Assembly (NCBI RefSeq): GCF_963506605.1
Contig: NC_083281.1
Location: 71,548,001-71,612,000, forward strand
DNA length: 64,000 nucleotides
Origin: Zootoca vivipara
Lineage: Eukaryota
Reading direction: 5' to 3'
The first letter of the stretch is position 1; every line of letters begins with the position of its first letter. Positions 7,503-47,169 of this stretch are shown piece by piece. The notes under the pieces were generated by a model that did not search any database, was not told where the DNA came from, and saw only the letters and a program-made list of their open reading frames with translations. A program made the position numbers and the translations under genes.

Positions 7503-7567
7503 TTATTCAGAAACGTCTTCTGGTGGAACTACTTCCATAAGCATCTGAAGGTGCATAGTGATGGGCT
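7503..7567 (-). CDS. SLC7A9: SLC7A9-A last coding exon
   Basis: [24 protein letters not shown] at 7503-7505. Confidence 0.95.
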
Positions 7568-10500
7568 CTGAAACACAGAAGTTGTTGAGGTCAGAAATGG
7601 CCTCATTTGCACTGTTAGTACCATTTCTTTTCCTAGATCAGCGTTTCTCAACCGCTGTTGCGCGGCACACTAGTGTGCCGCGACGTGCGGCGATGAGAAG
7701 GGCGATTTGCATTGTCACGTGCCTGGCGGCCGCCAATACACAGCACTAACCCGCCGGAAAGCAATATTTGGCAAGTGTTTCTTACAGTCATAATTATAAT
7801 ATAGGGCGGCACAGAGTTAAATTTTTTAACTTTTTTAATGGTGGTGTGCCTCGTGATTTTTTTCACGGAACAAGTGTGCCGTGGCCCAAAAAAGGTTGAG
7901 AAACACTGTCCTAGATCATTTCTCCTTTTGCACTTAACCACTTAGAAGCCTCAGTGTTGATTCCACAAGCCAGATTATGGGCTTTACTTTTCCTATAGCC
8001 AAATTACTGGTAACATGGATCTTGAAGTTGTTGAGGTCAGAAATGGCCTCATTTGCACTGTTAGTACCATTTCTTTTCCTAGATCATTTCCCCCTTTGCA
8101 CTTAACCACTTAGAAGCCTCAGTGTTGATTCCACAAGCCAGATTATGGGCTTTACTTTTCCTATAGCCAAATTAACATGGCTTTTGGGAATATTCCAGAA
8201 ATTACAGTCAAAACAAGTGCTTTATTGTGATGCTTTCCATTTCTTAAGTGTACCAGATGGTGTGTGCAGTGCTGAGCACATCATGTCTACCTAAAAACAA
8301 TATATTTTCAATATTAGCATCTTGTTATTTCTGGAAACATCAAGAGGTCTATTCAAAATCAGTACAATGGTACCTCGGTTTAAGTACACAATTGGTTCCG
8401 GAGGTCTGTACTTAAACTGAAGCGTACTTAACCTGAAGCGAACTTTCCCATTGAAAGTAATGGAAAGTGGATTAATCCGTTCCAGACGGGTCCGCGGAGT
8501 ACTCAACCTGAAGCGTACTTAAGCCAAAGTATGAGTGTAATTGGTTCTGGAAGTCCGTACTTAACCTGAAGCGAACTTTCCCATTGAATGTAATGGAAAG
8601 TGGATTAATCCGTTCCAGACAAGTCCGTGGAGCACTTAAACTGAAAGTACTCAAACCGAAGCGTACTTAAACCGAGGTATGGCTGTATACACAGTCTTAT
8701 ACTATTGGTGCTATGAGGGTAGAGTAGCATTTTGTTGTACTAGAACTCTGGTTGAATTGAATTATATTTACATGTTTATTTTTAACTCTGCAAACTATGG
8801 GCTGATATTAGATCACCGCTTTAACATGATGGAATTATAAGTGGTTGTTTGTTGGCATGGCGACTGGCAAAGTGAGGGCATCTCAGACCACATTTCAAAT
8901 GGTTTCCAGGACATAATGAGCTGTAACCTTATCTAAGTGTCAGAGTCCACTCAAAATTCCAGTTGCCACAATCAAAAGGATCTATTTCCTGTGTATTTCC
9001 ATCAAGTTTCAGTCTTTAAAGAAAAGATGGCTAGTGGTTAGGAAGAAGCAGGCACAGGAACGTCTAAAACTATATAGGGAGGCTTAAAAATTGTCTACCC
9101 TGAAGGAAGGTGGGAAATTCCAATTGGAATGTTTTTGTAACTGGAAACACTAGCACCCATGTGCCTGCAAAGGGCAAGTGGCCAGTGCAGAAACATGTGT
9201 ACTGTGTAATCTCTAGCAAGTGATCTGAGGAGACCACGTACCCCATTCCCGGGTCTATGAGCCTGCCCTATTCACATACTGTAATTTCCTCTCTACTGCA
9301 TCTCATGCACTCCACCTGTTCCTTTTTAAGAAGCTCTTTCCCTTTTGAATAAAAGAGCCACACCCAGATTATTTCATCACAAACACCTCTTCCCCCTGGG
9401 ATGGAAATCAACCAGATACTCACTTGAGATTTTTTGAGCCCAGCTGAATTTGAAGTGGATGAAAAGTACATAAAAGACAAGTCCACTGATAATAAATAGA
9501 GCGCAATACAGATATGGCAGCTCAGGTGCAGTGATGATGGGTGCCAGAACCAGCACAATGGAAACAAACATCACAAGAATGGGGATGATAAGAGGTACCT
9601 GCAAGACAGAGCGGAGGGGTAATGTAATTGTGTGTGTTGAAGAATCCCAGATTGGAACGACCTAGCAAGGCCAAGGAATATTCTGGCTCAAGATTCTAAT
9701 GCACTCCATTTTAACAACTTGGCTGTTGCATCAGGAACAGCATACAAATGTTACTTGCCAGGCCAAGAGAAGATCTGGTGGTTTTGGCAAGTCTTGCCAC
9801 AGCCCAGGCATTCCACATCTTAATAGGCTTCTGCATGCTACCCAAGTCATCCTAGGCCAAGGGTCAGCCTACTTTTTCAGCAGGGGGCCTGTCCACTGTC
9901 ATCCTGACCTTGTGGGGGGCAGGACTATATTTCGGGGGGAAATATGAACGAATTCCTATGCCCCACAAATAACCCAGAGATGCATTTTAAATAAAAGGAC
10001 ACATTCTACTCATGTAAAAACATGCTGATTCCCGGACCATCCGCGGGCTGGATTTAGAAGGTGATTGGGCCGCATCCAGCCCCTGGGCCTTAGTTTGGGG
10101 GACCCCTGTCCTAGGCTGTTTGGGGCTGGAAGCAGGCATTTTTAAAATGCTGGCTATCATGGCCTTACACAGGGCCTGTTTAAAGGACAGCTGTAGTTCA
10201 GTTTTCATACACTTTAGGGAAGTGTGAATTGGGCATTGTTTATTTACTGGATGTATTCGGCGCTTGCTACAAAAATGTCTCAAAGTGATTTAGAGTTATG
10301 AAAACATACATGATACAAAATTTAAAACACACCCAAAAGATAATTGACAAAAAGTACACATCCTGCAATCACATAAAAATGGCAAATCCTATCCCATCCT
10401 ACTAAACATTGAATATGGATATCACCATATCTTGACACTCCAGTTAAGAGCCAAATGCCTGGGAAAAGGAACATCTTTGCCAAAATGCCTAAAAGTTGAT

Positions 10501-46500: not shown

Positions 46501-47169
46501 AGTATGAGAACCGAAATGCAAAATTCAGAGAAGTGTGAATTTTGAAGGATAACTGGTTCTATTCATGTCCTGGTTTGGGAACTGAGAATTAGGTAGGTCT
46601 GCATTCAAATGAAAGCTGGCCAAATTTCTACCTCATTCCTAATTCTAAGCCTATTTAGGCTCAGGGCAAAACAGCTAATTCCCATGTTTTGCACGGTGCA
46701 CATTTTGCCGCAAATAAAATCCATTAAGGAGCTAAGCATACTTAAAACACATTTCTTTCATTGCTTTCAAAAATGCTGACTGTATTGTAGTGCCTCGAAG
46801 TGAATGCCATAAGCCAGGAATGGGGAATCAGATGTTCCTGGACTTCATTTCCCATCAGGCCCAACCAGCATAGCTGGAAATTGGGGGCCAATAACCTCTG
46901 AAGGGTCACAAGCTCCCCATTCCTGCCATAAACTATGCAGACCTATAAGCATCATGGGGCAGGTATCAGCCATAGGAGAGACACAATTTGGTTGAGGCCA
47001 CCTGGCGCTATTCACTACCTCTGGGAGGTTAAGAACTTCTAGGGCTGTTTCCAATATAATATATTACAAGTCTTGCCTCTTTCTGTAGATTCATAGATTT
47101 GCTTTTCTTGATGGGCGTTTCATCAGGTTCTTGATTTGAACTTCGTTTTCTGATGCCTTCTTCATCCAT
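34520..47169 (-). CDS. SLC7A9: SLC7A9 paralog B (canonical-type b0,+AT, 491 aa, intact)
   Basis: 12 coding exons: 47077-47169, 44720-44867, 43305-43547, 42156-42281, 41531-41630, 40171-40215, 39050-39173, 38704-38807, 37549-37645, 36679-36828, 35415-35589, 34520-34590. Total 1476 nt. Retains [20 protein letters not shown] and [15 protein letters not shown]. Confidence 0.97.
35415..35589 (-). CDS. SLC7A9: SLC7A9-B coding exon 11
   Basis: 175 nt, AG/GT. Confidence 0.95.
36679..36828 (-). CDS. SLC7A9: SLC7A9-B coding exon 10
   Basis: 150 nt, AG/GT. Confidence 0.95.
37549..37645 (-). CDS. SLC7A9: SLC7A9-B coding exon 9
   Basis: 97 nt, AG/GT. Confidence 0.95.
38274..38479. mobile_element. Palindromic hAT MITE (TAGGGTTGCCA ends), copy-B specific
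   Basis: Near-perfect 206-bp hairpin; TSD (A/G)AGGCACA; empty site at about 12320. Confidence 0.88.
38704..38807 (-). CDS. SLC7A9: SLC7A9-B coding exon 8
   Basis: 104 nt, AG/GT. Confidence 0.95.
39050..39173 (-). CDS. SLC7A9: SLC7A9-B coding exon 7
   Basis: 124 nt, AG/GT. Confidence 0.95.
40171..40215 (-). CDS. SLC7A9: SLC7A9-B coding exon 6
   Basis: 45 nt, AG/GT. Confidence 0.93.
41166..41414. mobile_element. hAT-Charlie-type MITE, copy-B specific
   Basis: TIR CAGGGGTC; TSD GTTTAGAA. Confidence 0.88.
41531..41630 (-). CDS. SLC7A9: SLC7A9-B coding exon 5 (TM6, WAYDG)
   Basis: 100 nt, AG/GT. Confidence 0.95.
42076..42127. repeat. (GATA)n microsatellite (shorter counterpart at about 16590)
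   Basis: Visible. Confidence 0.95.
42156..42281 (-). CDS. SLC7A9: SLC7A9-B coding exon 4
   Basis: 126 nt, AG/GT. Confidence 0.95.
42508..42786 (+). mobile_element. Older Sauria SINE (partial counterpart at about 17005-17235)
   Basis: GGTAAGGTAAAGGACCCCTG head and core motif. Confidence 0.7.
42803..43048. mobile_element. Tigger-like MITE
   Basis: AGTGGTAC...GTACCACT ends; same family as 62845-63073 in opposite orientation. Confidence 0.7.
43305..43547 (-). CDS. SLC7A9: SLC7A9-B coding exon 3
   Basis: 243 nt, AG/GT. Confidence 0.95.
44289..44527. mobile_element. Tigger-like MITE predating the duplication
   Basis: Same element as 18600-18838. Confidence 0.85.
44720..44867 (-). CDS. SLC7A9: SLC7A9-B coding exon 2
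   Basis: 148 nt, AG/GT. Confidence 0.95.
45061..45434 (+). mobile_element. Sauria SINE, copy-B specific
   Basis: AAGGTAAAGGG head; GGTCATGTGGCCAGCATGAC core; 13-bp TSD GCCATGTATCTTA. Confidence 0.88.
47077..47169 (-). CDS. SLC7A9: SLC7A9-B coding exon 1, GC donor
   Basis: 93 nt from ATG at 47169. Confidence 0.85.

Follow-up and report, generated by a model that had tools for sequence, protein, structure and literature searches.

A fast-evolving but constrained SLC7A9 paralogue with Ser in place of Asp233 in Zootoca vivipara and other lacertid lizards

Introduction

SLC7A9 encodes b0,+AT, the light chain of the rBAT-linked amino-acid exchanger known as system b0,+, whose failure causes cystinuria. 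How this system discriminates cationic from neutral substrates is still under study by mutagenesis. A 64-kb window of the Zootoca vivipara genome, the whole stretch of DNA analysed here, contains a tandem segmental duplication of ~27 kb in which each unit holds one complete SLC7A9 gene, as found by self-alignment. These genes are called A and B below. The locus raises the question of what the second copy is: an artefact of assembly, a redundant duplicate on its way to loss, or a transporter gene with an activity of its own. The original prediction, made from the letters of the window, held that B keeps the ancestral role and that A is under positive or relaxed selection. On its sequence, A is better described as the Zootoca representative of an SLC7A9 paralogue that is old and lacertid-wide and evolves fast but under constraint, beside a conservative parent gene. 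We assign a probability of roughly 0.6 to the full reading, in which both genes are intact, A belongs to an old lacertid A-type with the replacement D233S (human numbering) and a narrowed substrate range, and B has full b0,+ activity.

Results

Each gene was modelled with 12 coding exons (Table 1). Position 7503 is the final base of the A stop codon and 47169 the first base of the B ATG. Exons 1–11 are equal in length and phase between the copies and neither frame contains an internal stop or a frameshift, confirming the predicted pair of intact tandem genes. No SLC7A9-like frame was found on the plus strand within the window. All acceptors are AG and 10 of the 11 introns in each copy are GT-AG. 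The predicted integrity of the splice sites holds with one qualification, since intron 1 is GC-AG in both copies (donor at 20246 in A and 47077 in B; context AG/GCAAGA). Annotated Lacerta agilis and Podarcis proteins align gap-free over this junction and therefore use the same one. An in-frame GT lies 9 nt downstream of the GC donor, and its use would add Ala-Arg-Leu.

Database searches were run with single exons, and codon counts, alignments and trees were computed from the exon coordinates. A exons 2, 3, 4, 7 and 10 matched the Pfam family AA_permease_2 (PF13520) in collinear order, spanning profile positions 2–384 of 427, and exon 3 alone passed the curated cut-off (42.8 vs 27 bits). The short A exons 5, 8, 9 and 11, searched singly, gave no PF13520 match. 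Orthologues of A and B carry precomputed PF13520 assignments. For A exons 3, 5 and 8 the best PDB matches were b0,+AT (E 4e-36, 1e-12 and 1e-16), ahead of xCT, LAT1/2, y+LAT and Asc-1. These matches, together with a place inside the squamate SLC7A9 clade (see below), assign both genes to the SLC7A9 orthology group. Motif inspection found GSGIF, FYPGC, LWAY(S/D)GW, the Lys of transmembrane helix 5 (TM5) and the C-terminal VPP in both copies, so that all the motifs listed for A in the original prediction, W230/W235 included, are present in A and B alike. B is 98.2% identical (9 differences) to the L. agilis B-type protein (P0289, XP_033012533). With an intact frame, intact splice sites and counterparts kept in relatives, A has the sequence properties of a functional paralogue and not those of a pseudogene.

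Codon-by-codon comparison of the two genes reproduced the predicted counts exactly: 24 amino-acid differences accounting for 27 nt, 19 silent ones and a shifted stop (codon 490, TAA in A and CAA in B). Pairwise nonsynonymous divergence (dN) was 0.0246 and synonymous divergence (dS) 0.056, a dN/dS of 0.44. The three codons said to differ by two nucleotides were likewise recovered. These are codons 56 (TCC/GGC), 123 (AAG/TTG) and 235 (GAT/AGT), equivalent to human S54G, K121L and D233S; window codon numbers equal the human number plus 2. B is 79% and A 76% identical to human b0,+AT, and comparison with the human protein again gave 18 B-like sites, one A-like site and five uninformative ones. When squamate outgroups were used for polarisation the asymmetry became sharper: 23 of the 24 sites are ancestral in B and the remaining one, codon 467, in A, Val at that codon being confined to B (binomial P = 3e-6 for 23:1). 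A finding that squamates share A's residues had been named as grounds for abandoning the prediction; they carry B's state instead. B itself has changed only by I467V and by loss of its stop, which adds Gln-His. All other lacertid proteins end where A ends, which places this extension as derived in B and makes the shifted stop a change of B and not of A.

The outgroup profile combined a fragment from a mammal with two of reptile- or bird-like kind and with B exons 2–4 as separate rows, and it recovered tetrapod proteins including nine squamates. Searching a representative library with exon 3 returned mostly exon-sized fragments, which carried B's state at all six exon 3 differences. A search with the fish protein P0022 gave only fish among the best 120 matches listed. 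A profile combining the fish protein with all B exons as rows, in which MAFFT scattered the short rows, was not used.

Counterparts of A are present in other lacertids. L. agilis has two proteins annotated as "-like" on one 84-Mb record, XP_033012533 (B-type) and XP_033012535 (489 aa, A-type). In Podarcis muralis a B-type (XP_028596178) shares its chromosome record with an A-type annotated in several isoforms, and A-types are also present in P. raffonei and P. lilfordi. Eight sites separate all five A-types from all three B-types: V40L, E98D, P100S, K123M (Leu in Zootoca), D235S, A318S, G327S and A354V, or V38L, E96D, P98S, K121M/L, D233S, A316S, G325S and A352V in human numbering. Every A-type keeps Asn238 (human 236). 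Met at codon 123 of the other A-types indicates the path AAG>ATG>TTG for the Zootoca codon. S118C is common to A and the L. agilis A-type only, and T315A to A and Podarcis only. Of the 23 changes in A, about 8–10 are old ones common to other A-types as well, and 13 occur in Zootoca A only. In NCBI and UniProt the relatives' A-types appear solely as automatically predicted "-like" entries, and full-text searches of the literature library used returned no paper linking SLC7A9 with lacertids or with duplication in lizards.

In a maximum-likelihood (ML) tree the eight lacertid proteins formed one clade (support 100/100) inside squamate SLC7A9. The A-types grouped together (91/97), with Zootoca A sister to the Lacerta and Podarcis A-types, on branches of 0.036–0.07 as against 0.004–0.015 for B-types. 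Other squamates had one SLC7A9 each among the matches listed. From this topology, duplication most likely occurred once, in a lacertid ancestor after its split from amphisbaenians and teiids. A is then, by sequence, the Zootoca orthologue of the paralogue found in L. agilis and three Podarcis species, with a duplication predating these genera, an assignment that is less certain for the copy in this genome than for the others.

That reduced certainty reflects an alternative in which Zootoca duplicated SLC7A9 recently and on its own, A having come to resemble the Lacerta and Podarcis A-types by convergence. A and B are 95% identical with 2–9% divergence in the flanking sequence, and fewer residues separate A from B (24) than from the L. 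agilis A-type (32) or the lacertid A-types generally (32–44). It also lacks P330, V339 and T383 of the other A-types. An approximately unbiased (AU) test rejected pairing of the two L. agilis copies (P 0.0004); a tree with Zootoca A sister to B was not rejected (difference in log-likelihood 15.3, P 0.17), which speaks against a shared origin of A with the other A-types. The distances are nevertheless explained by a sevenfold difference in rate (see below), and the site patterns point the other way. Nine or ten derived residues unite A with the other A-types, against one (Ala443) uniting it with B only, and the A-type ones include states that are rare among 209 orthologues (D98 0.5%, S235 0.5%, V354 0%). 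The ML tree unites the A-types, and the mosaic divergence of the two units fits conversion following an old duplication. We regard an independent recent origin as quite improbable. A single old duplication is preferred on the derived-residue pattern and the tree, with lower certainty for the Zootoca copy.

Divergence between the units was measured from local collinear alignments in place of global MAFFT alignments of whole introns, which inflated divergence where transposon insertions differ. Non-exonic A–B divergence was 2.0–3.0% from downstream of the gene to exon 9, 5.4–8.9% around exons 3–8 and 3.6–4.6% around exons 1–2, a markedly uneven distribution (chi2 130, 14 degrees of freedom, P 7e-21). 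Six of the eight fixed A-type differences fall in the high-divergence centre. Some residues are common to both paralogues of a single species only, namely Ala443 in Zootoca, Val274 in L. agilis, and Pro289 and Val363 in Podarcis. Mosaic divergence and species-private shared residues fit occasional gene conversion, and we infer that neighbours have exchanged sequence from time to time with the diagnostic exons kept apart. Regional variation in rate or alignment quality could contribute to the unevenness. The absence of P330, V339 and T383 from A may reflect either conversion or later changes in the other genera. Such conversion would also lead to an underestimated neutral rate and an inflated omega (dN/dS).

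Since the genera split, 47 changes have accumulated on A-type lineages and 7 on B-type lineages, an A-type rate about seven times faster. Comparison of introns between the units (5263 clean columns) gave 3.8% substitutions and 0.78% gap events, 73% of them frame-shifting. The coding sequences contain no indels where 11.4 were expected for both copies together, and A has no frameshift against 4.2 expected if neutral (P 0.015). The chance of no stop arising after 36 random substitutions is 0.33. Conservation was scored over 209 vertebrate orthologues. Seven of the 47 later A-type changes hit sites conserved at 95% or above, well short of the 20.8 expected (P 8e-6). The private changes of Zootoca A did so in one or two of 13 cases against 5.7 expected, depending on how codon 123 is counted (P 0.006 or 0.03). 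The early fixed changes contrast with the later ones, four of eight (E96, K121, D233 and G325) falling at such sites (Fisher 0.04). The A-type pattern is one of an early burst at critical positions and constraint afterwards. The early hits on conserved binding-region sites hint at positive selection on the A-type stem, short of demonstrating it.

These results bear on the selection that had been proposed for A. Its acceleration and the ancestral sequence state of B stand. Of the two selective regimes offered, a purely relaxed one is disfavoured by the intact frames, the lack of frameshifts and the avoidance of conserved sites, and positive selection is no more than suggested by the early changes. 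Two outcomes that would have told against the prediction did not appear: the A-type open reading frame (ORF) is intact in all five species, where loss of function in relatives had been considered, and its later substitutions are not scattered at random.

The eight fixed changes include loss of Asp233, which lies in the unwound segment of TM6. This residue is present in B (GAT) and replaced by Ser in A and in every lacertid A-type. In b0,+AT it forms a salt bridge with the guanidinium of bound Arg, and the D233A mutant is inactive (PMC7159911). D233S, D233G and D233I all abolish ornithine uptake, while D233S keeps tyrosine uptake, at lower maximal velocity (Vmax), and cystine uptake (Lee et al. 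2022, PMC9110406). The same study argues that cationic substrates require one acidic residue, at either 233 or 236 (PMC9110406). With Ser233 and Asn236, the A-type has no acidic residue at either position. Thr123, two residues from the replaced Lys121, has been classed as lining the transport path (Yan et al., PMC7159911).

Other parts of the binding site and the heavy-chain contact are unchanged. The backbone-binding motif of unwound TM1 (human 43–47, I-G-S-G) is kept as GSGIF in A and B, preceded in A by V45M (human 43), where Met is the commonest state among the 209 orthologues. The heavy-chain disulfide Cys (human Cys144, within FYPGC) is retained by both copies. The gate and pocket-2 residues Trp230, Trp235, Gln237, Ser379, Trp383 and Tyr386 are kept in A within LWAYSGWNQ and FSFAVWIFY, and B has the corresponding residues. 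Several A-type states occur in other SLC7 carriers in PDB exon alignments: Ser at 233 in y+LAT1, IPKSGGDY and a Tyr at the Lys121 position in Asc-1, GS..NG and FT.S of TM8 in LAT1, and GS also in the xCT-type chain. An AlphaFold2 model of the L. agilis A-type (32 sequences) had a mean predicted local distance difference test (pLDDT) score of 42, too poor for residue mapping, and was not used. A is, on its sequence, a member of SLC7A9 by descent that has no residue of the kind giving the family its "+" specificity. By analogy with the mutants, the A-type would most likely be an rBAT-linked exchanger of neutral amino acids, and probably of cystine, that no longer accepts cationic ones; the substrate range of A is probably narrower than that of b0,+.

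Several observations weigh against this reading of a working, narrowed transporter. The substrate prediction derives from a single-change mammalian mutant, and the A-type has seven further fixed changes. Context matters at this site, as D233S/N236D double mutants are dead (PMC9110406). The F85S change of A is seen in 0 of 209 orthologues, and its A333V corresponds to human A331V, listed among cystinuria alleles in a review table; either could impair A. The nonsynonymous rate on the A lineage (26/1114 sites, 0.023) is close to the per-lineage neutral rate of 0.019–0.028 estimated from introns or dS. Taken alone this looks neutral, although that neutral figure would come out too low under gene conversion.

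The same rate, the excess of private A-type changes over B-type ones, and the presence of F85S and the A331V equivalent in A would also be expected if constraint had simply been relaxed. The A-type would then be a redundant duplicate drifting to loss, its changes tolerated as B works and the disabling hit still to come. Such a duplicate is hard to square with an ORF that has stayed intact, at unchanged exon lengths, in five species since a pre-generic duplication. Nor would it be expected to show no frameshift in Zootoca, to keep all splice sites, or to place its later changes away from conserved sites. Its replacement residues moreover occur in other working SLC7 carriers, and its diagnostic residues persist despite the signs of gene conversion. 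We consider relaxation alone improbable, though it is the alternative we take most seriously. Simple pseudogene decay of A is unlikely given the absence of frameshifts, the intact frames in five species and the avoidance of conserved sites. The A-type is accordingly treated below as a constrained paralogue.

The two units lie in the same orientation in the self-alignment, and an assembly gap falls between the genes, 10.3 kb upstream of the A ATG and 3.6 kb downstream of the B stop. Placed in this way, the gap is spanned by no reading frame, and A and B belong to different contigs of the scaffold. Two haplotypes, or a collapsed or expanded repeat, might for that reason have been misplaced in tandem over the gap. 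The junction of the two units (24.6–26.6 kb) nevertheless lies in sequence without gaps. Homology to unit 1 is collinear over the gap (unit 1 to 2502 with 27119, and from 5309 with 32232), a relation within the window sequence that does not in itself demonstrate continuity. The copies differ by 5% divergence, many indels and different transposon insertions. In L. agilis, as in P. muralis, the two types are annotated as separate genes within a single chromosome record. Between 54 and 84% of the words sampled from A's region occur in Zootoca DNA runs of several samples, drawn from two studies; three large RNA runs are also available for the species. An assembly or haplotype artefact is therefore unlikely, and misplacement of this kind over the gap is very hard to credit.

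Other features of the locus were recorded. A GC-rich (0.62–0.70), CpG-rich (observed/expected 0.6–0.67) stretch lies at 24500–26300 between the duplication units, with no match at 60.5–64 kb. It may be the counterpart of sequence lying beyond the left end of the window, and could act as promoter for an adjacent gene. A young long terminal repeat (LTR) retrotransposon at 54276–59194 on the plus strand, upstream of B, has no counterpart in unit 1. It contains an unbroken 1386-aa gag-pol-like frame (54671–58828) between 353-bp direct repeats that are 99.7% identical (54276–54628 and 58842–59194). A short dispersed repeat resembling a short interspersed element (SINE) occurs in both orientations at 17443–17539, 27139–27302, 30418–30628 and 48368–48574; the copy adjoining the assembly gap may have caused the assembly to break there. 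Intron 11 of A contains two copies of a 98-bp segment (7909–8006 and 8077–8174, 98% identical) that B has once (34654–34751), indicating a local duplication within A. The single B segment is 100% identical to the first A copy.

Table 1. Coordinates of the duplicated SLC7A9 genes, selected residues and duplication units within the 64-kb window
Feature	Positions	Strand	Details
Gene A (A-type SLC7A9 paralogue), ATG to stop	7503..20338	-	489 aa, coding sequence (CDS) 1470 nt; from exon models, splice sites and phases
Gene A exons (high-low)	20338-20246, 19173-19026, 17866-17624, 16766-16641, 16108-16009, 14007-13963, 13006-12883, 12635-12532, 11715-11619, 11136-10987, 9598-9424, 7567-7503	-	
Gene B (ancestral-type SLC7A9), ATG to stop	34520..47169	-	491 aa, CDS 1476 nt; from exon models
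Gene B exons (high-low)	47169-47077, 44867-44720, 43547-43305, 42281-42156, 41630-41531, 40215-40171, 39173-39050, 38807-38704, 37645-37549, 36828-36679, 35589-35415, 34590-34520	-	
A exon 3	17624..17866	-	E98D, P100S, K123L (site changed in all A-types; Met elsewhere); S118C (with L. agilis A-type); F85S and T93P private; V162F through first base of a split codon; FYPGC kept
A codon 123	17739..17741	-	TTG, Leu; AAG, Lys in B; human Lys121, TM3
A codon 235	16014..16016	-	AGT, Ser; GAT, Asp in B (41536-41538); human Asp233
A exon 8	12532..12635	-	T315A, A318S, G327S (human 313, 316, 325); TM8 motif shifted toward LAT1/xCT states
Duplication unit 1 (gene A)	1..24624		Probably starts left of the window; from self-alignment
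Duplication unit 2 (gene B)	26594..60536		Lengthened by insertions upstream of B; from self-alignment
Assembly gap (N)	30688..30880		Intergenic, within unit 2; dispersed repeat copy 30418-30628 on left flank

Discussion

The course of events that best accounts for the locus can be set out as follows. On the early A-type stem, eight replacements were fixed, and later changes accrued about sevenfold faster than in the B-type but at tolerant sites. Retention of the disulfide Cys and the backbone-binding GSG suggests that the A-type protein still pairs with rBAT. With Asp233 changed to Ser and Asn236 unchanged, it would have lost the only acidic residue of the unwound TM6 segment, and with it cationic amino-acid transport, keeping neutral exchange and probably that of cystine. 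Several other A-type changes would have recreated residues that are normal in neutral-amino-acid SLC7 carriers. B is predicted to retain full b0,+ function. Gene conversion may homogenise parts of the unit, with selection keeping the diagnostic residues of exons 2–9 apart.

If this is correct, the kidney or gut of lizards would handle cationic amino acids separately from cystine and neutral ones. The A-type amounts to a natural D233S change with seven co-fixed replacements. It shows which residues accompany loss of the charge-recognising Asp in a protein kept under selection, and can be compared with the sister gene of the same animal. The locus further offers a compact example of tandem duplicates that have diverged asymmetrically, with signs of gene conversion opposing selection and possible parallels in fish.

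Other SLC7A9 duplications were found among the annotated proteins. In both Chelmon rostratus (P0197/P0241) and Alosa alosa (P0196/P0214) a single contig carries two annotated SLC7A9 proteins, of which one has Ser233 with N236S in Chelmon and Gly at 233 in Alosa. From these residues, the teleost losses of Asp233 are a possible independent repeat of the lacertid event. In mammals, annotation places two distinct SLC7A9 proteins on a single scaffold in Octodon degus (P0302/P0332) and likewise in Cavia porcellus (P0305/P0326); the members of each pair are 94% and 92% identical, respectively, and both keep Asp233. These hystricognath rodent pairs mean that SLC7A9, taken at first to be single-copy in mammals, is not strictly so. 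If the fish parallel is real, tandem duplication followed by loss of Asp233 would be a repeatable route by which system b0,+ is split into two transport activities. The broadest account joins these strands: lacertids would have kept a second rBAT light chain despite homogenising conversion, a natural D233S switch would have made it a neutral and cystine carrier that excludes Arg, Lys and Orn, and loss of Asp233 would have been repeated in teleosts. We offer this only tentatively and give the combination somewhat less than an even chance.

The closest known system is b0,+AT itself, for which human and ovine structures are available (6LI9, 6YUP and 7NF6). A and B share with it the 12-coding-exon layout, the GSG motif, the rBAT-linked Cys, Trp230/Trp235, Asn236/Gln237, Ser379/Trp383/Tyr386 and VPP. 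A differs from it by Ser233, Met or Leu at 121 (across the A-types), E96D, P98S, A316S, G325S, V38L and A352V, and B by ordinary lineage changes and the two-residue C-terminal extension. The L. agilis protein XP_033012535 and the P. muralis, P. raffonei and P. lilfordi proteins named "b(0,+)-type amino acid transporter 1-like" agree with A in length (489 aa) and in the eight diagnostic residues.

The engineered D233S mutant of b0,+AT (PMC9110406) has the same change at the same position as A, with Asn236 likewise unchanged. It is a single change in a mammalian protein, whereas the natural A-type has seven further fixed ones located in or close to TM1, TM3 and TM8 and has co-adapted over tens of millions of years. 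The y+LAT1 and y+LAT2 carriers (SLC7A7/SLC7A6) resemble A in having Ser at the Asp233 position (FSYSGW against WAYSGW in A). They differ from it in having Asp at 236, pairing with 4F2hc and using Na+ with neutral substrates (PMC9110406); A keeps Asn236 and groups inside SLC7A9. The second copies of the teleosts Chelmon rostratus (P0241) and Alosa alosa (P0214) are like the lacertid A in being neighbouring duplicates of which one has lost Asp233. These teleost duplicates are independent and do not have the other A-type changes, and Chelmon also alters Asn236, which the lacertid A-types keep.

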